From Macrostomum lignano (taxonomy: Eukaryota), in assembly GCA_002269645.1 (NCBI GenBank), contig NIVC01000032.1, positions 930,001 through 994,000 of the forward strand: a DNA stretch of 64,000 bases. The letters are read 5' to 3'. Positions 5,009 through 63,210 of the stretch are shown one piece after another. The notes beneath the pieces are model-generated. The model ran no database searches. It saw nothing but the letters and a program-made list of their open reading frames with translations, and was not told the DNA's origin. Made by a program: the position numbers and the translations under genes. Position 1 is the stretch's first letter. The number at the start of each line of letters is the position of its first letter.

Positions 5009-12868
<7,860 letters not shown>

Positions 12869-12923: not shown

Positions 12924-13600
<677 letters not shown>

Positions 13601-14142: not shown

Positions 14143-17100
14143 ATGGTTCGCATTGCCGGCTTTCGCAAAGTCGTTGTCCGCTGTTGGATTTTGTTCTGTG
14201 CTGCAGTGGGGATCGCAGCAGGGGCTGCAGTGCACTTTTGCTGGCCAGAAACTGCTGGCCAACCGGCCCCAGCTGAAGCTATGCTGCTCAGCTCCAACCA
14301 TCTCAAAACTCCAGTCAATGGCGACAACGTGAACCTGACTGAGTCGCGTGTCAGGCGTCGGGTGCCCTGGTGCGGCAACACCAGGCTATTATCGCCAGTT
14401 ACCGCTCAGGTAGTCCTTGACTCAGAATTGATACCCTTATGAGATTTATCCATTTTTTCTGTATTTTCTCAAAACTGATATGCCTAATGTATAGGACAAA
14501 CTGGGCTTTTTCTATTTGATCCCCTTGTCTGTATGATCCCAGGCCTTTTGCTTGCGGACTTGGCTACAACCTGATCTGCTCTGGGTCTTCTGTTGTTGGG
14601 CCAACGCCCTACCAGATCTTCAGCTGGTGGTCACCGACCTCCTCAGCTGCTAGGTCACCGCCGCTCTCCCAGATCCGCAGCTGTTAGGTCACTGACCTCC
14701 CAGATCCTCAGCTGTTAGGTCACTGACCTCCCAGATCCTCAGCTGTTAGGTCACTGACCTCCCAGATCCTCAGCTGTTAGGTCACCGCCGCTCTCCCAGA
14801 TCCTCAGCTGCTAGGTCACCGCCGCTCTCCCATATCCTCAGCTGTTAGGTCACTGACCTCCCAGATCCTCAGCTGCTAGGTCACCGCCGCTCTCCCATAT
14901 CCTCATCTGTTAGGTCACTGACCTCCCAGATCCTCAGCTGTTAGGTCACTGACCTCCCAGATCCTCAGCTGTTAGGTCACTGACCTCCCAGATCCTCAGC
15001 TGCTAGGTCACCGCCGCTCTCCCAGATCCTCAGCTGCTAGGTCACCGCCGCTCTCCCAGATCCTCAGCTGCTAGGTCACCGCCGCTCTCCCAGATCCTCA
15101 GTCGCTGGGCCAGTCTTCCAGATACTCAGTCGCATATGCATATAACACCGTGCCGTATAGCACCGCTGGCATGAACTTTTAGCTGTTACTGACTGCAAAA
15201 CATTTGTGGATAGCTAATTTTCGAAATCACCACAGAAAACTGCAGTAAAAGCTTTCTTGGAAAAATGATTAACACAAAGCTTCAATGTCACTCACTGCAT
15301 GTACTCTGCACAAAAGGAGTTCCAATTTCTGAGCAGCCACAGAAGCAACCGAGACCTGTTGGTCTATTCGGCCTTCTACGATCCGAGACTGGCCCCCCGG
15401 AAGCCAATAATCCGTAGCACCGGAATCGCCCGCAATGTCGACATGAGTGGCCTGATGTGCCAGCTGTGGTACCGGCGGTGGTCGCAGGTGATGGTCACCA
15501 TGCAAGCTCACGTGGAACGCCTGCCAGAGGGAGACAGTCGGCGCTACCAGGCTGTGTTGATTACCTGCAGCACTTCCTCCAAGGTTGAAGAGATACCCAG
15601 TGCTGTGTCATTTGCATGGTGAGTAAAACTGTGCCTACACAGGTGAATCTGATAGCTAAAGATGCCAGCAAGATGTAAGAATCACTGCTCCGAACCAAAC
15701 CAACTGGGATCGATAACTGGTCCGACTGGTAGCACATCCCGGTCCCTCCCTTGAGAACCCCATGGCATAAAGAGGATAAAATGAGGATTTCATGAGGATG
15801 CGCGCCTCCTCGGTAATCTGAGTAGCTGCGGCCGGAGTCCTTTAATCCCGTTCGTGACTCGGGACCGCAGAGCCTCGACCAAGACTTCTTCAGTCTTTAG
15901 CGAATTCTGTCACCTAGTGTTCTCCAAGCGAAAAATTTCACATCCTCGTGGTGCTTGGCTGGTTGTTCCCTTAGACATGGGTTCCGAAGTTTGACTGTGA
16001 ACCCGACAGTAGAGGAGGTGGTGAGAAAGGTCCTTGTCGGCTCTTCGATGAGGTGAAATACCCATGTAGAAAAAGAACACAACTAATTCTTTGGACGAAG
16101 CGACCGGACGCAAGTTGCTTCCGCTTCCGCAGGTCGCACTGCGCCCAGCCCGCCGGCTTCCTCCCGGTACGCGTTCTGCCGTCAACGCCGGTCCGCAACG
16201 GCCAGTTTGCCGTGTGCATGTCGCCACTTCACTCGTTTTACGACAATGTTGATGAAGCGGTGCAGACGCTCGAGTTGAACCGCCTGTTCGGTGCCAACCG
16301 GTTCTTTGTGTATAATTTCGCATCGAGCAAGCGGGTGGCATCGCTGCTTGCCAGCAAACACGTGAGTGATGAAGTGGCACTGTGGGAACTGCAGTTAAAC
16401 ATAGTTGTTGGTGGCTACGTGTACATGAATTGCAACTCATTACCCATTGGAATTTCTGACAAGAATTGAGTTTATGTGTAGCTCTTCACTTTGTGATCTA
16501 AACTTTGTGAATTTTGTGAAGCGTCCCATTTCAGACTTGGATCTTGGATCTGCACCAGCCACCCTCCGCACCCTTTCGCACCTGCAGTATGCCAAGGACG
16601 TCACCGTCCTGCCCTTCCAACCGCCGGTAAACGTCGATAGGTGGCCACAGCCAAGCAACTACACAGTCGAAGTGAAACACTTCGCCCAGATGGCCATGCT
16701 GCAGGACTGTGTGATGCGCGCCTCTGCCAAATACGAGTTCGCTGTATTCACCGACATGAACGAGGTCGTTGTACCGAGAAGCGAGGGTCTTAGCAACTGG
16801 CGGGACCTGGTTCGAGCCCGCATGTCGGACAATAAAGCCGCTGGCCTGTCACTTCAGCACGCAGATTTCTGGCTGGAGTGGCCCGCCGATAGCGAGATGT
16901 CAGCCAACGCCACGATCTCCGGCCTGAAGCTGAGCGCTCTGCTGAAACTGCACCACGACGAGGTGCGCCTACACGGCACCCCGTCAAAGATGATCGTCAA
17001 GCCGCATTTCGTGCAACTCATGGGCGTGCAGTTGATGTGGCGGTACACCAAAGGTTGGGGCACAGAGTATGTCAACTACCGGCTCGCTGGCGTGCATCGC

Positions 17101-30680: not shown

Positions 30681-31243
30681 ATGAAAAATTCGGCCTACAA
30701 CTTTTCTGTGAAAAGTAACGAGCTCAAATCTGATTGGGTCCTAAAGATTTCGCTAGAGAACAAGTTGGATTCCTATTGGTCGAAATTAACGCCATTTTGA
30801 GGACTTACAGCAGCCATACCTTGGGACGGTGAATTTTTATAATAATAGCCGGCAGCAAAGTTGACAGACTGCTGCATGGACGCTGAGACAAATTTAATTA
30901 AAACAACACATAAGTTCAGATAAAAAGCACCAAAAATGGACAATCTAAAAGTGATTGGAGCATCCAATTTCAGCAGAGTTCCAAGCGATATCGACAATCT
31001 GAGTCACTGGCTGCTGGTAAGTTGAAAAGGAATTCATTAGAATTTATCAATAAGCGTACGTTAATCTAGTTACGTTAAAGGAACGCTAGTTCAAAAATAA
31101 TTTCCCCCGAATCGATACATCACCCAAGTCCGATCTGTTAAGTGCATCTAAGAAAGTTAATTGATTTCCTCGGATGGATATTGATCCCAAAAGACAGTAC
31201 TTATAAATTTTCTTTATTTTGTGTCTTTCTATACGATTTGCAG

Positions 31244-32512
31244 ACAACGCCGTCAACCCTCCTGTCAACTGTGACCTGCCTCACCTGGTCCTATTTGCAG
31301 TCTGGCAGCTTTATCCTGCTAGCGATATGCCTAGTAACCATTAATCTGATTGTTGTGCTAGGCAATACTTTGGTTGTTCTGGCCGCTTGTACATCGGCTA
31401 AGCTGCAAAACGCGCTGACCAGCACCTTTGTAGTGAGCCTGGCTTTAAGCGACCTTCTACTTGGCGCTGCAGTGCTGCCGTTCTCAACTGTGCACCAGCT
31501 GCTGCTCAAGCACTGGGTGTTCGGCAGCCGATGGTGCCAGATCTGGCTAGCTACCGATGTCTGGACCTGCACAGCCTCCATTCTCAATCTGGTGATTATC
31601 AGTCTCGACCGCTACCTCAGCTTGTGCCATCCGTTGAAGTATCCAAAGTTGATGAATAGACGCCGAGCTCGAGGCATGGTTGCCGGCGTGTGGATTCTGG
31701 CCAGCGCCATCAGCCTGCCCACCCTGCTGGCTGGTTCCGCGTCTAATCAGTACGAGCTAGAAAATGACGCTGACAATGATACATCGGGGGTCACCAGCGA
31801 TAAGCCAACCGGATGTCTTCGCCTGGGTCCAACATGCACCATTGCTCAGAGTGAACGGGGATACATTGTCTATTCAGCGCTTGGTTCGTTCTTCATCCCA
31901 TTTCTAGTGGTGACTTATTTGTACGCTAAGATCTGTACCGTGGTGCATCGCACTTTGCGAGCTGGACGCATGGGAACGGTCACTGTGCAGGCTCGCAGGC
32001 AATACGGAGAGCTCCGGGTGCACAGAGGCGGCGGAGGTGGCAGCGGCGGTGGCGAAGGGCAGACGGGAGCTCCGCTTTTCTCGGCTCGTTACGGTCGGGA
32101 GCTCAAAGCGGCCCGCATGCTGGCGATCATCTGCGTAGCCTTTGTTGGTTGCTGGGCGCCTTTCTTCTCTGTCTACCTGTCCGGTGCAGCCTGTCCGGGC
32201 TGCGTGCCACCCCGAGTTTTCGACTTCTGCTTCTGGCTCGGCTACCTGAACAGCGCTTTAAACCCCTTCATCTACGCGCTTTTCTCCGCTGATTACCGGC
32301 GAGCGTTCAAAGCGTTGATTGTTCGACTGTGGCGGGCCAGACCAGTTCCTGGCTTCTGCTCGAAGCGACAGAGTGGCGGCGGCGGTGTCGTTGGCGGCGA
32401 CATCGGCCGCGGGGCCAGCGGCGGGATCGCCGGCAGCAGCGGAGCGAGCAGGCTGATGATGACCACCCAGCGCGAAGGATTTGGCTCGTTTTCAGCTGAA
32501 ACTCAAGCTTAA
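31244..32512 (+). CDS. Rhodopsin-class biogenic amine GPCR, most like octopamine alpha (OAMB/OctalphaR-type) receptors; main exon
   Basis: 7 TM segments. TM3 WLATDVWTCTASILNL..ISLDRY (Asp3.32), TM5 YIVYSALGSFFIP, ICL3 ELRVHRG, TM6 KAARMLAII..FVGCWAPFF, TM7 FWLGYLNSALNPFIYALFS. Strong acceptor ttctatacgatttgcag at 31243; the start codon must lie in an upstream exon. Confidence 0.88.
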   Translation, partial: TTPSTLLSTVTCLTWSYLQSGSFILLAICLVTINLIVVLGNTLVVLAACTSAKLQNALTSTFVVSLALSDLLLGAAVLPFSTVHQLLLKHWVFGSRWCQIWLATDVWTCTASILNLVIISLDRYLSLCHPLKYPKLMNRRRARGMVAGVWILASAISLPTLLAGSASNQYELENDADNDTSGVTSDKPTGCLRLGPTCTIAQSERGYIVYSALGSFFIPFLVVTYLYAKICTVVHRTLRAGRMGTVTVQARRQYGELRVHRGGGGGSGGGEGQTGAPLFSARYGRELKAARMLAIICVAFVGCWAPFFSVYLSGAACPGCVPPRVFDFCFWLGYLNSALNPFIYALFSADYRRAFKALIVRLWRARPVPGFCSKRQSGGGGVVGGDIGRGASGGIAGSSGASRLMMTTQREGFGSFSAETQA

Positions 32513-48997: not shown

Positions 48998-51900
48998 TTA
49001 ACCTTTGAATACGTCGGGAGCGGAGAACAGGATGGCACAGGTGGACACGATAGTGAAGCAGGAGAACATGATGAGGCACAGCCGGTCCACAACTCTGGCA
49101 GCGAATTTCCATTCGCTTGAGATTTCGTTATCGGCAATATCGTCGGAAATTTTCTTTGTTATAATGCGAAGCTCGTTGAGAACGGCGGCTAGGTCGCCCC
49201 GGGTGCTGCACTGATGGGTTGCAGCGTGCTGCTGCTGCTGCTGGTGATGGCCGTTCGAGGAGGGCGACGGCGCTGAGGCGCCGATGCAGTTTTGAAAATA
49301 GGTCGGTGGTCCGACGCCGCCTCCGCCACGAATGTCGTCCTCCAGGTCCAGCACGTTCGCTAGAAGCGACTTCGATGATCTCTCTCGCAGTTCAAAATTG
49401 CCAGCGCCGCCGCCGACGCCGCTGCTACCGACACCGCAGTATCCGCCGCCGGCGCCGCCGAAACCTCCGCCGAATTCGCGGCTTCTTCTTCGACGCATCG
49501 TCATCGAGGAGTTTCGAAACGATGAAGTTCGAGGCTGCTGGCCGGACGCCTCTCGCGTCTTGGCGGGATTTTGCATGCACAGCACGGTGGCCAAATAGGT
49601 GCAGATCAGCTTTCGCACCTGGGAAAGAGTTTTTTTTTGCTTTTACTTAGATGTGATTATGTCTTAGAACTGTCAGGGGTTCGATTCTCGACCCACTCGG
49701 AACAATTTGTGTCCTTGAGCCAGACACTTGACTTTGAACCCCTGCTTCAGTTCACCCAGCTGTAAAATGGGTGCCAGCATTGGCTGGGGGTAATTGAGGA
49801 TGTGTGGCGACCCGGATCCTTGGACTGAACAGCCGTACGCAGCTTTCAGATGCGCTGCGCAATAGCTGCGGCTGAGCTGTCGGTTGCACATAATCACTTT
49901 TTAGTATAATTAGAACTGTGTATAGCATGCGTACAAATCCATAATTGTGTTTCAAGAGCAGAGTAGATCAAGTCTACCTTAAGACTGACACCTCTTATTT
50001 TTAGTACCTACAATTCTTCTTTGAGATATAGAAGCATGTGCCTTATTGTTGACACTTTTTGGAGTGATAGACACTTTTCTGTAAGTACGAGGGTAGACAA
50101 GCTCTTTCGTAACTGACAGTGATTTCTTGAGACAGACACGTAATGGAGTCTCAATGTCAACCGAAATAGAATCGCTTTTCTATAGAAATCGGATTCTTCT
50201 CGACCGAATTTGTCTATGGTAAGACCCCATTTAGCGCTATGCATTCTCCAGTACAGATTCTACAGTTTAAACTCCAAGATGGGCCAATCCAGCGCGTGAC
50301 CGCAGTGCTAAAGCCCCAGGTTTCAGACCATAGACTGTATAGCTGTTGCTGCTCTAGAGCATTAGCAGCAGCAACAGCTGGTGTCTATGGCCTGACCCCC
50401 CGGGGCTTTCGGGGCCTTGGAGATGGCCACTAAATACAGCTTTTATTTGCAGCCCATTTGAGGGGCTTACGCGCAGTGAATAGAATCCAATATATGTTTG
50501 CCAAAGTAATGGAGCCTTTTGTCTATGGTACAAGGCTGGCACAACGGCATTCCATATCCATTACTTTGGCACACATATCTTGGATTAAATTCAATGCGTG
50601 TTTAAAAATCTATAAATTAGCAAAGTCTGAGAATGACACATCAGGGTATTATAGAATCTGTGTTCTCTAGGCCATACTGAATGCCTTCTTTGACGACCTC
50701 TGGCTCATTTCAAAGAAAAATCCACTCTATAGCCTCCTTCAACTTTAGTTAAAAATGGTAAACGTTTCGGAACATCTTTCTTTTGAGAGCAAGACACATT
50801 ATAATCCTTAGTGAATTGCCTAATATCTAAAGATCAATGCATATACAATATTTTGTGGATTTTATTGATAGTTCGGTTCCTGTCCCAGACGTACCCAGTT
50901 CGGCACAGGGTGCGATTCAGCGTCTCTGTGATGATAGTTGAGCACGATCACCGTGAATACGACTGATAGACTGCACATGATCATGGTGCACGCAAAGTAC
51001 ATGCCTAAAATTGATTTAACAGCAGATTTTTCGTTTAGTTTTTTTAATTCTACAATTGATATTCATGCTAAATAGTTTTTATAAAAATGCTTACTGCATG
51101 TATCACTAAACAGCTTTAAACATTCACCATCTAGAAATGCACATGGAAGCAATCCGCAATCGCAACACAATCCACATGGAAGCAATCTGACATTCAACAA
51201 AAAGCCACATGGAAGCAATTCACTATTTAACAACAATCCACATGGAAGCAATCTGACATTCAACAAAAATCCACATGGAAGCAATCTTACATTCAACAAC
51301 AATCCACATGGAAGCAATCTGACATTCAACAACAATCCACATGGAAGCAATCTGACATTCAACAACAATCCACATGGAAGCAATCTGACATTCAACAAAA
51401 ATCCACATGGAAGCAATCTGACATTCAACAAAAATCCACATGGAAGCAATCTGACATTCAACAAAAATCCACATGGAAGCAATCTGACATTCAACAACAA
51501 TCCACATGGAAGCAATCTGACATTCAACAAAAATCCACATGGAAGCAATCTGACATTCAACAAAAATCCACATGGAAGCAATCTGACATTCAACAAAAAT
51601 CCACATGGAAGCAATCTGACATTCAACAACAATCCACATGGAAGCAATCCGCAATCGCAACGCAATCCACATGGAAGCAATACACTATTCAACAATAATC
51701 CAATTGGAAGAAGCTCTTTATTTCACAACAGTCCACTTGGAAGCAGCCCTTCATTTAACAACAACCCATGTGGAAGCAATTCACTATTTAACAACAATCT
51801 GCATGGAAGCAGCTCTTCATTCCACGTGATTTTCCATTTCAAACATTCTTTAAATTGCCAAACCAATAGTAGTAATAAAACAAATTCGAAATAAAACTCA

Positions 51901-54900
51901 AAACAAAAATGACAAGAAAGGTTATTAATAGTGCATAAACGGTGCCCTCCCATTGTCTCACCAATAACGGGAACCGCATCCGAAGTCGGTGGCATTGCCT
52001 CGGCCACCATCATGAGAAACACGGTCAAGGACAACAGGATAGTAACACCTGTGCTCGCCAATTCGAATGTTGTCCCAGAGCGAAGGTGAGAAACAAAGGA
52101 TATCGAAAATTAACAAAATAAATCGTTGCATTGTATTTGTGCTTTGCAACATTTATCTAAACAAAAATTTACGATTGTCTAGTCATTAATTTTACAACGT
52201 ATTTTGCGCACACCTACACTGTTCTATCGCTAGAAACGATTTATTTTAAAAAATTAAAAAAGTGTGCATGGCTGGTAAGATTGGCAGGCACGGAATGACC
52301 GGATCGTTTTGCCAAAAGTTGATTTTCAAATAAATTAAATAAAACAAATATTAATATAAAAAACGCGTTAAATTTACAGTTAAACAAAATTGACGTTGTT
52401 AGGTACTGGTATAATTAAAAGTTATTAATTATTTTGAAAATGAAAAGTCAGCAAACGATTTAAACAAAATTGTTTTTACTTGCTTTAAAACTGTTAGCTC
52501 ACCAATAAGTGGCACCGCTTCGGAAGTCTGCGGCATTGCGTCGGCCACCAGTAGTTGAAACATTGTTAACGACAACATTATTGTCACTCCTAGAGTTGTC
52601 ATTAAAATGTACTTTTACTGCAAATTATAGATTATAGCAAATTATATAGGCCATGCTACAACAGCTAGTTATGAATGGGCTTATGGTCTACTACAGTTTT
52701 AGGTAAGAACAGTGCGCAGTGCTGGGTAAGTTTTTTGTGAAAATGTTTACTTGAAATTTGTTGATCTGTTTAGAGTCTGTACCATAGAAACTCCACCTGT
52801 TAGACAGAAGTTACACACACCTGTTAGACACAAGCTACACACCTGTTAGACACAAGCTACACACTTGTTAGACACAAGCTACACACACCTGTTAGACACA
52901 AGCTACACACACCTGTTAGACACAAGCTACACACACCTGTTAGACACAAGCTACACACCTGTTAGACACAAGCTACACACCTGTTAGACACAAGCTACAC
53001 ACTTGTTAGACACAAGCTACACACCTGTTAGACACTAGCTACACACCTGTTAGACACAAGCTACACACCTGTTAGACACAAGCTACACACCTTTTAGACA
53101 CAAACTACGTGTACAAACTTGTTAGACACAAGCTACACACGGTTAGACACAAGCTACACACCTGTTAGACACAAGCCACACACCTGTAAGACACAAGCTA
53201 CACACACCTGTTAGACACAAGCTACACACACCTGTTAGACACAAGCTACACACACCTGTTAGACACAAGCTACACACACCTGTTAGACACAAGCTACACA
53301 CACCTGTTAGACACAAGCTACACACACCTGTTAGACACAAGCTACACACACCTGTTAGACACAAGCTACACACACCTGTTAGACACAAGCTACACACCTT
53401 TTAGACACAAACTACGTGTACAAACTTGTTAGACACAAGCTACACACGGTTAGACACAAGCTACACACCTGTTAGACACAAGCCACACACCTGTAAGACA
53501 CAAGCTACACACCTGTTAGACACAAGCTACACACCTGTTAGACACAAGCTACACACCTGTTAGACACAAGCTACACACTCCTGTTAGACACAAGCTACAT
53601 ACCTGTAAGACACAAGCTACACACCTGTTAGACACAAGCTACACACCTGTTAGACACAAGCTACACACATGTTAGACAAAAGCTACACACTCCTGTTAGA
53701 CACAAGCTACACACCTGTTAGACACAAGCAGAACACACCTGTTAGACACAAGCAGAACACACCTGTTAGACACAAGCTACACACTTGTTAGACACAAGCT
53801 ACACACGGTTAGACACAAGCTACACACCTGTTAGACACAAGCTACACACTTGTTAGACACAAGCTACACACGGTTAGACACAAGCTACACACCTGTAAGA
53901 CACAAGCTACACACACCTGTTAGACACAAGCAGAACACACCTGTTAGACACAAGCTACACACCTGTTAGACACAAGCAGAACACACCTGTTAGACACAAG
54001 CTACACACCTGTTAGACACAAGCTACACACCTGTTAGACACAAGCTACACACCTGTAAGACACAAGCTACACACACCTGTTAGACACAAGCTACACACAC
54101 CTGTTAGACACAAGCTACACACCTGTTAGACACAAGCTACACACCTGTTAGACACAAGCTACACACCTGTTAGACACAAGCAGAACACACCTGTTAGACA
54201 CAAGCTACACACCTGTTAGACACAAGCTACAAATCTGTTAGACACAAGCTACACACATGTTAGACACAAGCTACACACCTGTTAGACACAAGCAGAACAC
54301 ACCTGTTAGACACAAGCTAAATATAAGCAGAACCCATAAACACACGTCTCTTGCTACGAGTAAACTTCTTTTAGTTGCAGTTCCAAACTTATACGAGCAG
54401 GTGGCTATGACAAAACTCGTAGCAGGTAGATAATAGAAATGCATGCAACAGAAAGTGCTCAAGCAACAATAAATTCGATTAAATGACAAAAATATCAACT
54501 TTAAACTAAGCTTTCTATTCCGATTGTTACAAATATAAATTATAGATACCTGCTACATTACTCGATGCCAATAGATTTTTTATCGGGTTAAAAACAGCTT
54601 TTGAATTGGACTTTAGAGTAGGACTGTTAGAATAAATCTAAGCAATAGAGGAGATGAATCCATTCAAAGAATACGACAGTCAACCAAGGCAGACAGGCAG
54701 TCATGCCAACAGCCACAATTTCTAAAGTATTCGAAGATATACCAGTAATTTTAAAATCTTGCACTCAATAGCCCTAGCAAGGTGCAATCGTTGAAAAACA
54801 TCAAACTGAAAGGAACGTAAGCCCACCCAGTTGTCTGGAGCGGCGCTCTGATGTGCCAGCGGCCCAGGCTCGATTCCAAGTGCAGTTACATTAATTTGTG

Positions 54901-57900
54901 GCTACATTGTGGCTACATTGACTCTGCTCGTGAAATTAACGCTCAGCTTGAGGCCCGAACCCCAAGGCACAGTGAAGTGTACATGCCTAACGATAAATAA
55001 AGTTAGGGTCGCTGTACACTCCTGTGTGAGTGTGTGCCTGTGCAAATGACTGCGTACGTATCCGCGCGCTTGTGTGCCTGCTCAGGGGAGTCGGCGGAAT
55101 GGGGGCAGTAATGCCTCACGCCGGTTGTGTGACAATGTCGCCTACTTAAAATGCCTCTAATAAAAACGGACGCACCTAAAGAGATTTTCTCGCCAGCATC
55201 GGGCGGCAAGATGAAAGTGAGTAGCGCCATAGACGAGATGAGCACGCATGGAATGATGAGGTTAAAGCCATAGTATAGGGTCCGCCTGCGGATCTTAATT
55301 TGATATCGCAGATCTATGAACGGATGCGGGCAGCAGTCGTAGGTAATGGCGAATCTTTGACAGGGCATCTCTGCAAAGCACAGTCAGAGTTAAACAATTG
55401 CACAGATAATTTGCATAGGGTGTTGCCTTACCGAACATTTTTAAGTGCGCGTTGACGCGTCGTCAATAAGGTTATCCAAGGTGGGTTCTTTTAGAGCAGC
55501 TGGACCAGGAACCAGACGTCAAAAATAATCAAAACAGTTACTTCGTACTGCACGAAAATGAATGGGATATACCGTGCTAATTGTGCTATATATCGATAGA
55601 CAAGCTGCAAACAGATTAAACGTGAAAATTAAAATTTCAACAGTTGTGCTTGTTGAAGACATGCATTAATGTGTGCGCGTATTTGTTGAAGTACACATGA
55701 ATTTCAACTGTTCACTTGGTCAAGACCTTGCCAGAGAATCTTACCAGCCATGCTGCATACTATAGCTTTTTGCAGCCCATTTAGGCTTATACACATTGAA
55801 TTTACTCCAAGACATGTCCACATATAGTAATGGAGCTTTTGTCTATGGTAGCAAGTTTGGCACAGGTCCAACATTCCACTGCACCAATACAGGGTGACGC
55901 CAAGAATACAATCTGCTCAGTTACAACAAAAACAAAATAGCATTTCAGCATGTTCAAAACTTCACAAACAAAAGCTCCATTACTTTGGTAGACATATCTT
56001 GGATTAAATTAAATGCATGTAAGCCCAGATCTGGGCTGCAGAAAGCAATATTAACCATTTTTACATTGCACACTGATCTATGGAATGCGATTCGCCCTCT
56101 TACCGAAGCTGACTTTCTCGCCAGCATCAGGCGGTATGATGAAGCTTAGCAGAGCTAGGCAAGCCAAGAATGAGCATGGCGCTATCAAGTTGAATATGTA
56201 ATAAAGCTTTCTTCGACGGATTTTCATGAAGAATTCCAGATCTATGAATGGATAGGTGCAGCAGTCGTACAGATTACTGTGTCGAATTCCGGGAATCTCT
56301 GCAAGCCAAATGCGGGGAAGTTTTCGCACTTTGTGGACAGATTCTGCTACACCAAAAGTGCATTAGCAATCGGATAAGAAAGTTCGAAAGTTCCTTTCTT
56401 ATACTCGTAGAATTGCTCTTTTTATTGCCAATCGTTCAGATTAACAGGATCTTCTTTTGCGTAAGGAACCGCTGCAGCTAGTTAGCTGGCAAGGCACCTG
56501 GTTAACCCTTATGCTTGGGGTCTCTAGTCCTCTCCTCTGCTCTCCTTTCCTCTCCTCTCCTCTCCTCTCCTCTCCTCTCCTCTCCTCTCCTCTCCTCTCC
56601 TCTCCTCTCCTCTCCTCTCCTCTCCTCTCCACTCCTCTCCACTCCTCTCCTCTCCACTCTGCTCTCCTCTCCTCTCCTCTCTGCTCTCCTCTCTGCTCTC
56701 CTCTCCTCTCCTTTCCTCTCCTCTCCTCTCCTCTCCTCTCCTCTCCTCTCCTCTCCTCTCCTCTCCTCTCCTCTTCTCTAATCTCATCTCCTCCTTCTCA
56801 TCTCCCTTCCTCTCCTCTTTTCTCAATCTCTCCTCTCCTCTCCTCTCCTCTCCTCTCCTCTCCTCTCACCTTCTCTCTTCTAGTGTTTTTCCTCGTCTCC
56901 TTTCCCATATATCCCTTATCTGTTCTCAATTATCTTTCCTCTCTCCCCTGTTCCGGTCCGCAGTCATGCTCTAGGTTCTCTATCTGGCCCTTGAAATGAA
57001 AACGTCAGCTGACTTCTGCCTTAATCAGTGTATATTATGTGTTTAAATTAGTAAATCATCTTTTAAACTGCAAACGGAAATAGCTAAAAATAACAAATAA
57101 TAACAAAAAATCGCTAATTACCGAGGGAGAAATTATGCAATAATTAGTAGTTCGAGTTTTTTCCACAATAATTTAGCTCCGTTTTCTTCAACTAGATTTG
57201 ATCAGCCGTCTAGCATATTGGTTTAATCGTGCTAAACAAACTTTCAACAGTTGGGACAACTTCAAGCTTTCCTTAAATTAATAATTTATTCGTGTTATTG
57301 ACTCCGCGCTCGTTCGATTTGTTTTGCTTTAATGACGGATGATGGATTGATTAACCAAAAGCTCCTCTGACGGGGCCCAGCAGCCTTGTTAGACTTTTGC
57401 TTTAATCCCCCTCCCCAATACCTAGCCTCTCGTGTTCTGTTTAATTATGCAGACTCGACAACTCTGAAGCGAAAAAGCATGTTGGCTGACTGGCAGGGAG
57501 AATTATATGACAGCCTTGCAAGCAGTGTGGCTTTATAGCTGGCGCCACCAGACCTAACTGGGGCAAAAACTGGAAAAGTCCTAATTAGTTTTTAACAAGA
57601 TTTTTCTCGCGGCACTGTTGTAACTGCAAACTGTCCAAACTGTTAGACACCTGTGCAGCAGACTCGACTTGTTAGCACTCTGTCCGGGGCCTCAGTCTGC
57701 TAATAAATTGACGATGTCAGAGAGCCTAGCTGGTCAACATTTAACAACAGATTTGTGAGCGCACCCGGTAGCTAAATTAAATGCTTTCTTTGCTTAGGGT
57801 AATTCATTAAGTAAATTGATATTTGGTCAAACGGTTTTTTCAATGAATTATTCTAAACTATGTACTCAATCCGTAAACTGGACTTTCATATCAATTAGGT

Positions 57901-60900
57901 TAATTAGAAACACACAAGTTAATTTGCAACCCGAGATCGGTTAGTCAAGTAAAAAAAGCAAATGTAACAGAAAAGCAAAATTATCAAACCTTCGAGGTTC
58001 CATTCTCCGCTAGGAATGTAGGTAGAAATGTCTCCAGCCCCATTCACTGAGCAGTTTAACGGGTCGTTCAGACGCTGCTCAATCGTCACCAAGCTCTCAT
58101 TGTTGCACTTGAACCTCAAATCGACTGTGCCGCCGTCATAGGTCCACGAGCCGAATTTCAGTTTGCACACCTGGGTATCAAACGGGAACCAGGTGATGTC
58201 AATCTTGCAGGTTGAACGAAACATTCCAGGCGGTACGTAGGTCATGAGGCCCGTGTGGTCGATGACCACGTTGGTCGGATAGGTTGCATCGAACTTCTCG
58301 TCGGCGCTGTGTGAAAAAACAATGGTAGCAACTTTACAGGAATTTTGCTGGCAAAAGCAACGGCCACTTTAGTATAACAGGAAGCAATCTGGATTTTCAT
58401 ATTAGCTCATATTTCCTTTTTATTTCATCAGCTCAAGGAACTAGTATGCATCGAAATGAAATTTTTATTTCAAATATACTTGACTCAAGAAAGAGCAAAA
58501 CAAAAAGTTCTGCAAATACTACTTGTGAGTATTTAGACCTTTGGGCTTGTGAAATAAAAACAAAACAATATGAAAGCAAAATTTTAAGTACACAGCTATA
58601 TAAAATATTAATAATAATAATTGATTACACCTGCCCTAATAGGCAGATGTGCAACCGACAGCTCAGCCGCAGCTATTGCGCGGCGCATCTGAAGGCTGCG
58701 TACGGCTGTTCAGTCCATGGACTGGGGGGTCGCCACACACAGCCTCAATTACCCCAGCTAATGCTGGCACCCATTTTACAGCTGGGTGAACTGAAGCAAT
58801 GCAGGGCTGAGTGTCTTGCTCTCAAGGACACAAATCGTTCCAGTGGGAATCGAACCCCCGACCTTGGGGTATATAAAATAGAGTAGAATAGCATGCTGAT
58901 GTGCATGCTAATTTAAAAGAATGACAATCTTCACTGCCCAGATCAAATGTAATAATTTATTATCTGATGCAAAAAAATGATTCTCTTCCATCTCCGCAGT
59001 GTGTTGTTTGCAGGAAATCGGCCTCCTGTTATACTACAGTGGTCCTTGAGCAAAAGATGATTATATGACAGTCAAGACAGCCTTTTCAAATTAGCTTACC
59101 TATTGTACAGCAGAATATCCGGTTTCCAGACTCGTTTTGGGTCGATATTAATTTTTGTAACCTGCCCATATTCAGCAGGATCCCATTTAAAATGATAGTC
59201 GACCCAAGTCTGGAAAAGGAATTTAAACAAAATTGTTGAATTGTTAATGCAGGCAACATGCTCGAAATTTCTTTAGAAAAATCCAAAGCTTTGCTTATGT
59301 GTAATTACTCATATGGAAATGCGCTAAAACAACAGTTATATCGGATTCATTAATTTCCATTAAAGTACATGAAAAACGTGAAACAAACCAGTTCTGATAA
59401 TTTGTGCCGAATCTGTAGGCTTAAGTTGTTAGACAGCCAACAGCTGTGCATCTGGCAGTTGGGTCTGGGTCTTCGATTAATAAAGAAATAGACCTCCTCG
59501 ACTTGAACGGTCTTTTCCCGGATGTATATTATAATCCGCAAGTTCACAGAATATTTCTAGACTATAGTTTGTAAAGTTTTTAAACTATATATAGGATATA
59601 GAACTGTTTGCACCAACAGATGCAGGTCAATTTCACAGGAACTCACGGTTTTTGCGTGGAAAAATACAGTAGCGAGGAAGGAAGTTATTACTTTACTAGC
59701 ATTATATTGACAACGCCTCACCTTCTGAAAGTCCTCTCTCCCCTCATCTCTTCCTCTCTCCTCATCTCCTCTCTCCCTTCATCTCTTCCTCTCTCCTCAT
59801 CTCCTCTCTCCCCTCATCTCTTCCTCTCCCCTCAGCTCCTCCCTCCCCTCATCTCCTCTCTCCCCTCATCTCCTCTCTCCCCTCATCTCCTCTCTCCCCT
59901 CATCTCCTCTCTCCCCTCATCTCCTCTCTCCCCTCATCTCCTCTCTCCCCTCAGCTCCTCTCTCCCCTCATCTCCTCTCTCCCCTCATCTCTTCTCTCCC
60001 CTCATCTCCTCTCTCCCCTCAGCTCCTCCCTCCCCTCATCTCCTCTCTCCCCTCATCTCCTCTCTCCCCTCATCTCCTCTCTCCCCTCATCTCCTCTCTC
60101 CCCTCAGCTCCTCTCTCCCCTCATCTCCTCTCTCCCCTCATCTCCTCTCTCCCTTCATCTCTTCCTCTCTCCTCATCTCCTCTCTCCCCTCATCTCTTCC
60201 TCTCTCCTCATCTCCTCTCTCCCTTCATCTCTTCCTCTCTCCTCATCTCCTCTCTCCCCTCATCTCTTCCTCTCTCCTCATCTCCTCTCTCCCCTCATCT
60301 CCTCTCTCCCCTCATCTCCTCTCTCCCCTCATCTCCTCTCTCCCCTCATCTCCTCTCTCCCCTCAGCTCCTCTCTCCCTCATCTCCTCTCTCCCCTCATC
60401 TCTTCTCTCCCCTCATCTCCTCTCTCCCCTCAGCTCCTCCCTCCCCTCATCTCCTCTCTCCCCTCATCTCCTCTCTCCCCTCATCTCCTCTGTCCCCTCA
60501 TCTCCTCTCTCCCCTCATCTCCTCTCTCCCTCATCTCCTCTCTCCCCTCATCTCCTCTCTCCCTTCATCTCTTCCTCTCTCCTCATCTCCTCTCTCCCCT
60601 CATCTCTTCCTCTCTCCTCATCTCCTCTCTCCCTTCATCTCTTCCTCTCTCCTCATCTCCTCTCTCCCCTCATCTCTTCCTCTCTCCTCATCTCCTCTCT
60701 CCCCTCATCTCCTCTCTCCCCTCAGCTCCTCTCTCCCCTCATCTCCTCTCTCCCCTCATCTCCTCTCTCCCCTCATCTCCTCTCTCCCCTCAGCTCCTCT
60801 CTCCCCTCATCTCCTCTCTCCCCTCATCTCTTCTCTCCCCTCATCTCCTCTCTCCCCTCAGCTCCTCCCTCCCCTCATCTCCTCTCTCCCCTCATCTCCT

Positions 60901-61860
60901 CTCTCCCCTCATCTCCTCTCTCCCCTCATCTCCTCTCTCCCCTCATCTCCTCTCTCCCCTCATCTCCTCTCTCCCCTCATCTCCTCTCTCCCCTCATCTC
61001 CTCTCTCCCTTCATCTCTTCCTCTCTCCTCATCTCCTCTCTCCCCTCATCTCCTCTCTCCCCTCATCTCCTCTCTCCCTTCATCTCTTCCTCTCTCCTCA
61101 TCTCCTCTCTCCCCTCATCTCTTCCTCTCTCCTCATCTCCTCTCTCCCCTCATCTCCTCTCTCCCCTCATCTCCTCTCTCCCCTCAGCTCCTCTCTCCCC
61201 TCATCTCCTCTCTCCCCTCATCTCCTCTCTCCCCTCATCTCCTCTCTCCCCTCAGCTCCTCTCTCCCCTCATCTCCTCTCTCCCCTCATCTCTTCTCTCC
61301 CCTCATCTCCTCTCTCCCCTCAGCTCCTCCCTCCCCTCATCTCCTCTCTCCCCTCATCTCCTCTCTCCCCTCATCTCCTCTCTCCCCTCATCTCCTCTCT
61401 CCCCTCATCTCCTCTCTCCCCTCATCTCCTCTCTCCCCTCATCTCCTCTCTCCCCTCAGCTCCTCTCTCCCTCATCTCCTCTCTCCCCTCATCTCCTCTC
61501 TCCCCTCATCTCTTCTCTCCACTTCCTCTCCACCCTCTATTGGCTGTCGTATCAAATGTCTACCGCTATCACTACCTGGTCTTTCCGCCTCTTCCAATTT
61601 ATGTTAAATTAAACTACAGTCGTAATTAATAGTTCCGATAACAACAATGACAATCAATTATTTTGCTAGTACAGACAATGATCTATCATGGCACAACAAG
61701 CAATCAAAAGCGAGATGCCTAAAATTGAAACATGTACAAACTACAAAAGTACAAAAAAATACGTGAAAAAACACATGTTACTGTTTTTGCATCGACTCCA
61801 GCGTAAGGCACTCACCAAATCCAACCAAATGTTAGCAAACAGGATCTGGTTTTTCTCATC
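48998..61860 (-). CDS. alpha7-like nAChR alpha subunit (gene 2) with duplicated exons 7 and 8; exons 1-2 not found in the window
   Basis: Exons (minus): 61860-61816 (45 nt, [15 protein letters not shown]), 59209-59100 (110 nt, [10 protein letters not shown]), 58306-57990 (Cys-loop [18 protein letters not shown]), 7A 56298-56104 or 7B 55370-55176 (195 nt), 8A 52589-52503 or 8B 52048-51962 (87 nt), 51004-50895 (110 nt, TM3), 49618-48998 (TM4, stop). The 45/110/195/87/110 exon sizes match the CHRNA7/Dalpha6 gene structure. Confidence 0.93.
49676..49895 (+). mobile_element. CORE-SINE, copy 2
   Basis: B box GGTTCGATTC, CORE block and 3' tail shared with 58640-58870. Confidence 0.75.
50328..50393. 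mobile_element. Tiny palindromic element bounded by CCATAGAC...GTCTATGG
   Basis: Internal AGCTGTTGCTGCT / AGCAGCAACAGCT stem; the same end motif brackets 38186-38290. Confidence 0.45.
51140..51830. repeat. 33-bp minisatellite (CCACATGGAAGCAATCTGACATTCAACAAAAAT)
   Basis: Tandem copies in the intron between exon 8B and exon 9. Confidence 0.9.
51962..52048 (-). CDS. nAChR gene 2 alternative exon 8B (TM2: [28 protein letters not shown])
   Basis: cacag|GT...ATTG|gtgag; 87 nt, phase 1-1. Confidence 0.9.
52503..52589 (-). CDS. nAChR gene 2 alternative exon 8A (TM2: [28 protein letters not shown])
   Basis: ctctag|GA...ATTG|gtgag; 87 nt, phase 1-1; missed by the ORF track. Confidence 0.88.
52790..54320. 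repeat. 22/24-bp minisatellite (ACACCTGTTAGACACAAGCTAC)
   Basis: Roughly 65 copies in the intron between exons 7B and 8A. Confidence 0.93.
54821..55140 (+). mobile_element. Family-2 tRNA-derived SINE, near full length
   Basis: B-box-like GGCTCGATTCC head; highly similar to 62911-63210. Confidence 0.78.
55176..55370 (-). CDS. nAChR gene 2 alternative exon 7B (loop [11 protein letters not shown] + TM1, GEKISL)
   Basis: tttgcag|AG...TTAG|gtgcg; 195 nt, phase 1-1. Confidence 0.9.
56104..56298 (-). CDS. nAChR gene 2 alternative exon 7A (loop [11 protein letters not shown] + TM1, GEKVSF)
   Basis: cttgcag|AG...TTCG|gtaag; 195 nt, phase 1-1. Confidence 0.88.
56525..56950. repeat. (CTCCT)n and CT-rich simple repeat
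   Basis: Read directly. Confidence 0.9.
58640..58870 (-). mobile_element. CORE-SINE, copy 3
   Basis: Reverse complement of the 1236 and 49676 copies (CCCATTTTACAGCTGGGTGAACTGAAGCA; GAATCGAACCCC). Confidence 0.75.
59725..61530. repeat. CT-rich ~17-bp minisatellite (CTCCTCTCTCCCCTCAT)
   Basis: Read directly; explains the 673-aa S/P/L ORF. Confidence 0.93.
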
Positions 61861-62910
61861 CTAGAAATCAAAGAGTTGAGAGCGAAAAAGCTGCATGGTG
61901 AGAGCTATAAGGTAAAGCAAACTAGATCAAGGATGCCTGGGCTTATTTAACTGTTATGTTGGACTTGTAGAACATTTTCACCCTTTATTCTCTTACCAGA
62001 CAGTTGAATATTGAAATGGAAAAGAAGACTTTAAAAAAATTCAGAAAAAAATCGCAATGTTTTATAACCAAACAAAGCATGTATTGTATAGTGATGCAAG
62101 GTGTGTAAACTAACAAGGATCGATAGAGTCTCAGGTTAGCAGAGCAAGGAAGAATTGTAAAAAACGGGACTACAATACTATAGAATGCTTTTCTAGATAC
62201 ATTTGACCAGCCGATGACCAAAGCTGCAAGGTTAAAAACCTGCGGGAGTTCACTAATGGATAGGTATAGCAGGTTTTTCCCGTGAGTTGCAATCTAATCA
62301 ACTTCATCAGCATCCGCAAGCGCCATTATAGCCTGATATTGCAATCATTTTTGTCTCCATATATGTAAAAAAAGGTTCAACAAAAGTGGGGATTGAAAAG
62401 TGCTCACTTTGTCGTTGCATGCATAGGTAAGGGCGATTTTTGTCCAGTAATTTCTAACCTATGCTCACAAACATTCACTGCAAGCGAGACAAATCAGAAC
62501 GCAGTTTTAAAACAAAAATGCAGACTGTTATTTTTTGGCAAGACAAATGAAATTGGAAATGTTTTTACCAAATACGAAACCACTACCGAGTGTTATAGTA
62601 GAGATTAAAACAAAGCTACGAAATTTGAAAAATATAATCAACCAATGCAATTGCAGTCAGGGCAAAGATGGATTACTGACTGTGTCTAGCCACATGTTGG
62701 TGTAAATTATTTGCAATCTTTCGTCCTGAACAAGAAAAGTGAAAATGTGAGCAGTTATTGCGACATTTTGTTGTTATGAGAATTGTGCAAACACCTGTAA
62801 AACACACATAAGCTTGGAAAAAGCTTAGAGCACTCCAGTAATGCCTGTATTTGCTAACAACAAGAACTATCAAGTTTATCAATTAGGCTACCCGAGACAG
62901 CAAGCAATCA

Positions 62911-63210
62911 AGCAAAGCAGTGGTCCAGCGCGGCGCTCTGATGTGCCAGTGGCCCAGGCTCGATTCCAAGTGCAGTTACATTAATTTGTGGCTACATTGG
63001 AATCTCTGCTCGTGCAATTAACGCCCAGCTTGAGGCCCAACCCCCCAAGGCACAGTGAAGTGTACATGCCTAACGATAAATAAAGTTAGGGCCGCTGTAC
63101 ACTCCTGTGTGAGTGTGTGCCTGTGCAAATGACTGCGTACGTATCAGCGCGCTTGTGTGCCTGCTCAGGGGAGTCGGCGGAATGGGGGCCTCTCGCCGGT
63201 TGTGCGACAA
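62911..63210 (+). mobile_element. Family-2 tRNA-derived SINE, near full length
   Basis: TGGTCCAGCGCGG / GGCTCGATTCC head plus the shared body. Confidence 0.78.

Follow-up and report, generated by a model that had tools for sequence, protein, structure and literature searches.

How are the choices made at two sites of alternative splicing coordinated on one mRNA? This is an open question, and known cases of coordinated splicing are mostly explained by trans-acting factors common to both sites or by the kinetics of transcription. It is raised by a nicotinic receptor gene of Macrostomum lignano, which lies on a 64,000-nt stretch of contig NIVC01000032.1 (positions 930,001 to 994,000; assembly GCA_002269645.1), referred to here as the window and numbered from its first nucleotide. 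The gene carries two successive pairs of duplicated exons in the order 7A-7B-8A-8B. Here we describe two complementary segments, one in the intron between 7A and 7B and the other in the intron between 8A and 8B, whose pairing in the pre-mRNA may couple the two choices.

Open reading frames (ORFs), Pfam matches and inspection of splice sites agreed with the exon layout 7A/7B and 8A/8B that a preliminary description of this DNA had given, and placed the exons on the minus strand. The gene runs from about 63 kb to 49 kb and encodes a Cys-loop nicotinic receptor, with matches to the Pfam domains Neur_chan_LBD and Neur_chan_memb and a YDCC motif in both copies of exon 7. It belongs to the alpha7-like clade: its closest relatives are annotated as alpha7, acr-16 or alpha6, and its best matches are M. 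lignano alpha7-like proteins. The UniRef model P0002 is 91–98% identical to most of the window exons (98.5% for exon 7A) and 86% identical to the last one, and is probably a homeolog or allele of the window gene, from a locus ~95% identical to it. A query with the gene-specific cytoplasmic loop retrieved no NCBI model of the window gene or of a homeolog. Within each pair, the tandem copies are homologous and agree in length and phase (195 nt for 7A and 7B, 87 nt for 8A and 8B). The exon 7 copies encode the first residues of the pore helix M2 as ...GEK(V/I)S(F/L)G, and exon 8 encodes the remainder; in standard alpha7 numbering, we take this split to leave positions −1′ to 4′ at the end of exon 7 and 5′ to 20′ in exon 8. 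As all four exons are phase 1-1 with lengths that are multiples of three, every combination stays in frame and nonsense-mediated decay would be unable to enforce exclusivity. At 733 nt (7A-7B) and 454 nt (8A-8B), the introns between the copies are too long for steric exclusion.

The preliminary description had reported an exact 17-nt inverted match between these two introns, and both sites could be located: GCATGGCTGGTAAGATT at 52266–52282 (plus strand) and its exact reverse complement AATCTTACCAGCCATGC at 55737–55753. Across the whole window, with up to two mismatches allowed, the 17-mer matches these two sites only (0.01 expected). Ungapped extension lengthens the match to 28 nt with 86% complementarity (52266–52293 and 55726–55753) at an arm spacing of 3,432 nt, so that the 17 perfect base pairs grow to ~24 pairs over 28 nt. 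In the pre-mRNA, the upstream arm lies 350 nt past the 7A donor and 355 nt ahead of the 7B acceptor, and carries a consensus-like 5′ splice-site motif, CUG/GUAAGA (the slash marking the splice site). The downstream arm is located 209 nt past the 8A donor and ~217 nt ahead of the 8B acceptor (Table 1). The arms sit in the introns flanking 7B and 8A, on the transcribed (minus) strand; as had been proposed, their pairing would enclose exactly these two exons and draw the 7A donor towards the 8B acceptor.

In a seed-and-extend search, the best local duplex between the 7A-7B and 8A-8B introns had an energy of −48.6 kcal/mol. None of 1,000 dinucleotide shuffles reached this value (mean −24.0 ± 3.3, minimum −38.4 kcal/mol; Gumbel p ~4 × 10^-5), and a mini-construct of both arms folded at −46 kcal/mol (z = −9.4). 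RNAduplex applied to whole introns was discarded in favour of such local duplexes, as it returned meaningless helix chains (−154 kcal/mol vs −141 kcal/mol for shuffled sequence). Among the ten pairs of the five introns between exons 6 and 9, 7A-7B with 8A-8B was the single strong outlier. As a second null, 320 pairs of segments that equalled the two introns in size and spacing were taken from real Macrostomum DNA and given composition-matched z-scores. Apart from the stem, a single locus came to z ≤ −7, a pair of transposon copies similar over more than 70 nt. The preliminary description had put the chance of a 17-nt inverted match within a 6-kb span at ~1 × 10^-3; the arithmetic is right, and the figure is conservative for an intron pair of 733 × 454 nt. 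No Rfam family was detected between 48.5 and 59.5 kb.

We scanned the whole 15-kb pre-mRNA for further partners of the two arms. Each arm was the other arm's best partner, and neither had a second strong one: the next-best duplexes, at −35 to −37 kcal/mol, were loopy structures. We also looked in the 6-7A and 8B-9 introns for alternative partners that would make the structure bistable, and found none. A weak signal between the 6-7A and 8A-8B introns was traced to a purine microsatellite pairing with the polypyrimidine tract of 8B. The scan also revealed no docking site with two or more competing selectors, as in Dscam1-type clusters. As no competing partner of either arm was found in the pre-mRNA, the term 'switch' used in the preliminary description is unsupported. 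The interpretation given there is, as a whole, partly supported.

How might such a stem act on splicing? The best-supported explanation, which we hold at even confidence from sequence and folding, is that the arms serve as a functional long-range intronic RNA bridge favouring 7A-8B splicing. In the pre-mRNA of this alpha7-like receptor, the arms would pair in a duplex of about −46 kcal/mol and close a 3.4-kb loop around 7B and 8A. The 7A donor would be brought towards the 8B acceptor, leading to one long 7A-8B splice in which both inner exons are skipped together, whereas in the absence of the stem the inner exons would be usable. A hairpin resembling a miniature inverted-repeat transposable element (MITE), with a probable TA target-site duplication, ends 4–5 nt from the upstream arm; as the MITE folds on itself in RNA, the arm would effectively lie ~55 nt from the 7A donor. 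Under the model established for Drosophila srp, one stem would provide both the downstream pairing of the exon 7 pair and the upstream pairing of the exon 8 pair. The two choices would in this way be coupled, giving an outer isoform with 7A and 8B and an inner isoform with 7B and 8A. Such coupling would be functionally sensible because the end of exon 7 and exon 8 each code for a part of M2. What the analysis shows is the stem sequence with its position, stability and statistical excess; that the duplex forms in vivo and shifts splicing is inferred.

A more specific proposal, which we hold at a little less than even confidence, is that one and the same stem acts as the selector of both neighbouring mutually exclusive pairs, 7A-(7B-8A)-8B, and hard-wires the coupling of the isoforms. 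M1 and both halves of M2 would then always come from co-adapted exons, either of the outer or of the inner pair. The architecture would be kept, with differing arm sequences, in at least two Macrostomum paralogs, and it may date from the time when the 7A-7B intron outgrew steric exclusion. In the literature searched, we met no account of a single stem linking two pairs of mutually exclusive exons. Loop-out of an exon group by intron pairing is already established, and the 'unusual design' of the preliminary description, if real, would thus be a variation on a known process rather than a new kind.

Paralogs and database gene models bear on the proposed bridge. Two M. lignano contigs from NCBI, L001 and L002, carry a paralog with the exon order 7A-7B-8A-8B, whose exons are ~75% identical to those of the window gene and whose introns cannot be aligned with it. 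In the same intron pair, specified beforehand, L001 contains a 19/20-bp stem of unrelated sequence (GAAUGGAUGAUCAGGGUGGC × GCCACUAUGAUCAUCCAUUC), with one arm 26 nt downstream of the 7A donor and the other 65 nt upstream of the 8B acceptor. Its energy of −40.0 kcal/mol was reached by 3 of 1,000 shuffles, and it lends modest support to an RNA bridge. A third M. lignano paralog (L005, NIVC01004712) has a single 7B-like exon 7 (13387–13581) and a single 8A-like exon 8 (14244–14330). It lacks both 7A and 8B, so that a locus has either both outer exons or neither. Among the gene models, 7A occurs with 8B in P0002, and 7B with 8A in P0003, P0004, P0203 and P0005; the combinations 7A with 8A and 7B with 8B appear in none of the available models. 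The P0002 database model joins 7A straight to 8B and skips the enclosed exons.

Further alpha7-like genes were found on two European Nucleotide Archive (ENA) metagenome contigs, L003 (10058–10525) and L004 (10079–10522), in which the exon 7 copies lie 78 and 54 nt apart, respectively, within one ORF, and exon 8 is single. As both carry a tandem exon 7, duplication of this exon is not confined to Macrostomum. Here the exclusivity of exon 7 may result from steric exclusion. With such closely spaced copies and a single exon 8, the two contigs were unsuitable for a comparison of the stem, as was L005 with its unduplicated exons 7 and 8. Among Macrostomum genomic ORFs (Logan and others), nothing close was found over the arms or exons 7B and 8B.

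Several observations weigh against a functional bridge. The upstream arm is transcribed 3.4 kb ahead of its partner, and the 7A donor could splice first. The gene models are not uniform: P0001, P0121 and P0205 read through both copies (the genes of P0001 and P0205 being further four-exon paralogs), and two models span all four exons. As L001 and L002 are the same sequence (0 mismatches), they provide only one independent comparison, and on the composition-corrected real-sequence null the z-score of the L001 stem is a ~4% event. The arms of the window and of L001 are identical at 11 of 17 positions, which is not significant (shuffle p = 0.07). We considered that these arms might be homologous, as their differences look compensatory; with this p value and introns that do not align, homology was rejected as unproven.

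The leading alternative is that the stem is a neutral by-product, which may or may not pair in RNA, without a selected role in exon choice and placed where it is by coincidence. It could be the relic of a transposon fragment or the product of a template switch or of an inverted micro-duplication. We regard such an origin as rather unlikely, with several features of the locus in its favour. M. lignano is repeat-rich and the upstream arm abuts a MITE. Of the eight complex inverted matches in the window that are exact over at least 17 nt, six evidently derive from hairpins or repeat copies; a seventh, 2308/6700, proved to be a transposon pair and is also the only other locus with z ≤ −7. The perfect 17 nt are at the outer ends of the stem and pairing weakens inward, a pattern also shown by terminal inverted repeats, and the paralog stem is a ~4% event on the real-sequence null, as given above. 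Moreover, an inverted pair of ~230 nt resembling short interspersed nuclear elements (SINEs) occupies intron 9-10 and intron 5-6 of this gene, and complementarity alone is therefore no evidence of design.

The arms themselves fit this origin less well. Their similarity ends abruptly at 28 nt without flanking homology, and the sequence next to them occurs nowhere else in the window. Further copies of the 17-mer (up to three mismatches) or of the 28-mer (up to six mismatches) were absent from ~140 kb of M. lignano DNA, comprising the window and ~77 kb of other loci. With similarity stopping at 28 nt and no other copy in this DNA, the stem is unlike a transposon pair. As the bases just outside both arms are unmatched, there is no target-site duplication either; none of the marks of a transposon-derived inverted pair (long similarity, extra copies, target-site duplication) was found in the window and these loci. 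That the upstream arm is part of the adjacent MITE was ruled out, as a shorter related copy of the hairpin at 50446–50610, in intron 9-10, has different, unrelated flanks. A 3.5-kb element with the arms as its terminal repeats was likewise rejected, since exons 7B and 8A, which lie between the arms, are ancient and the diverged paralog shares their order. A random pair would have a prior chance of landing in these two short introns of ~3 × 10^-3 of the pair positions in the gene, and under neutrality one would not expect a paralog to carry an independent stem between the corresponding introns.

The duplex could also form and have another main effect, which we consider improbable. One such effect would be back-splicing to a 282-nt 7B-8A circular RNA, for which complementary flanking introns are a classic driver (PMC10790352). 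Back-splicing and linear 7A-8B skipping are, however, usually two outcomes of one loop, and a circular RNA would add to the bridge rather than replace it. The other would be masking of a decoy 5′ splice site from U1: the G/GUAAGA of the upstream arm equals the core of the real 7A donor (UUCG/GUAAGAG), and the downstream arm is a U1-like complement. The paralog stem lacks a 5′ splice-site motif, however, which argues that decoy masking is not the shared feature. Pure chance is very improbable: in random sequence, a meaningless 17-nt inverted match is expected ~0.1 times per 64-kb window and ~6 × 10^-3 times in the ~14 kb of introns of this gene (by arithmetic), but the match continues past the 17-mer, each arm is the other's best partner, and the shuffles stayed short of the observed energy.

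The proposed bridge resembles and departs from known systems of RNA pairing. In the two-exon cluster 4.1/4.2 of Drosophila srp, bidirectional RNA pairing has been described (Yue et al. 2016, PMC4691838). As in srp, Dscam1 and 14-3-3zeta, the exons of the window gene are tandem homologous copies, and an intronic element between the copies is complementary to a distant intronic element; as predicted from the sequence, pairing would loop out the unused copy and join the chosen splice sites. In contrast to these genes, the partner is itself the inter-exon element of the next pair, such that one member of each cluster would be excluded at once, and, unlike in the Dscam1 type, the scan gave no docking site for which several selectors would compete. 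Skipping of exon groups through intronic loop-outs is established for a six-exon cluster of human DST and for two exons of hTERT (review, PMC10790352). The window gene shares with these cases complementary segments in two non-adjacent introns that enclose several exons, and these are predicted to promote joint skipping. It differs in that the enclosed exons are alternatives from duplicated pairs rather than cassettes: joint skipping would swap in the outer copies, with frame and architecture kept.

In the insect nicotinic acetylcholine receptor Dalpha6, mutually exclusive exons form the clusters 3a/3b and 8a/8b/8c (Jin et al. 2007, PMC1919356). The window gene likewise belongs to the alpha7-like clade and has duplicated alternative exons that include the M2-coding exon. 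However, the insect clusters are far apart, in the ligand-binding domain and M2, and PMC1919356 describes no RNA pairing that links them, whereas in the window gene the pairs are nested and lie side by side, one coding for M1 and the first part of M2, the other for the remaining M2. Steric hindrance across a very short intron solves the same problem, namely how double inclusion of 7A and 7B is avoided; the spacing is 54–78 nt in L003 and L004 but 733 nt in the window. Inverted transposon pairs of the Alu type, which give rise to circular RNAs and exon skipping, also place inverted complementarity in the introns flanking exons. The 17/28-nt stem differs from them in having no extended similarity, no extra copies in the DNA searched and no transposon hallmarks.

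If the RNA bridge is real, isoforms would be coupled by a simple mechanism that can be tested, a cis-acting stem tying together one member of each neighbouring exon pair. It would explain how a channel with its pore helix split over two alternative exons escapes mismatched halves. The case is tractable, with M. lignano open to transgenesis, a short stem and a binary prediction (7A with 8B, and 7B with 8A). If the stem is instead neutral, it would caution that repeat-rich genomes yield convincing-looking long-range pairings.

Table 1. Arms, duplicated exons and repeats in the receptor gene (window coordinates)
Feature	Position	Strand	Location and description
Upstream arm (pre-mRNA)	55726–55753	−	7A-7B intron; 5′-GCAUGGCUGGUAAGAUUCUCUGGCAAGG-3′
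Downstream arm (pre-mRNA)	52266–52293	−	8A-8B intron; 5′-CCGUGCCUGCCAAUCUUACCAGCCAUGC-3′
Exon 7A	56298–56104	−	195 nt, phase 1-1; loop-C Cys-Cys, M1, start of M2
Exon 7B	55370–55176	−	195 nt, phase 1-1; alternative copy ending GEKISLG; inside loop
Exon 8A	52589–52503	−	87 nt, phase 1-1; M2 variant; inside loop
Exon 8B	52048–51962	−	87 nt, phase 1-1; M2 variant; just outside stem, 3′ side
MITE-like hairpin	55758–56053		7A-7B intron; 22-nt terminal inverted repeats 55758–55779 / 56032–56053
SINE-like inverted pair	49670–49900 / 58650–58870	opposite orientations	~230 nt, ~88–90% identical; tRNA-like GGTTCGATTC box
22-bp minisatellite, 67 copies	52794–54319		7B-8A intron; ~1.5 kb of the 3.4-kb loop
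Transposon copy, ~340 nt	54826–55166		inside loop, ~10 nt after 7B donor

The repeats of the receptor gene extend beyond the proposed loop. If the two SINE-like copies paired in the pre-mRNA, their duplex would be far longer than that of the 17-mer and would enclose exons 6–9; it may drive the skipping of several exons or the formation of circular RNA. The family of the transposon copy next to the 7B donor (~82% identical) is also present at 62918–63210 and in the paralog on L001 (2946–3269). Tandem arrays occur in two further introns: a 33-bp unit repeated 20 times in 8B-9 (51135–51811) and a (TCCTC)n microsatellite in 6-7A (56528–56867). The latter is purine-rich in RNA and complementary to the polypyrimidine tract upstream of 8B (52077–52091 / 56864–56878). 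Outside the receptor gene, the 18-nt exact inverted match at 2308–2325 / 6700–6717 is part of two opposed transposon copies (2285–2395 and 6640–6960; ~75 nt, ~85%), one of which holds an internal hairpin insert at 6741–6930.

The same gene contains two candidate copies of an upstream exon of the ligand-binding domain, at 62660–62773 and 61813–61860 (minus strand), one of which holds QDERLQIIYTNMWLD. The gene may thus hold a third pair of duplicated exons, perhaps also mutually exclusive, which would recall exons 3a/3b of insect alpha6. A second, more distant nicotinic receptor gene lies at ~5063–11035 on the minus strand, with exons 7 and 8 apparently fused and unduplicated. On the plus strand, an intronless ORF of 456 amino acids at 31142–32512 resembles a seven-transmembrane amine-type G-protein-coupled receptor, with DRY-like and NPxxY-like motifs.

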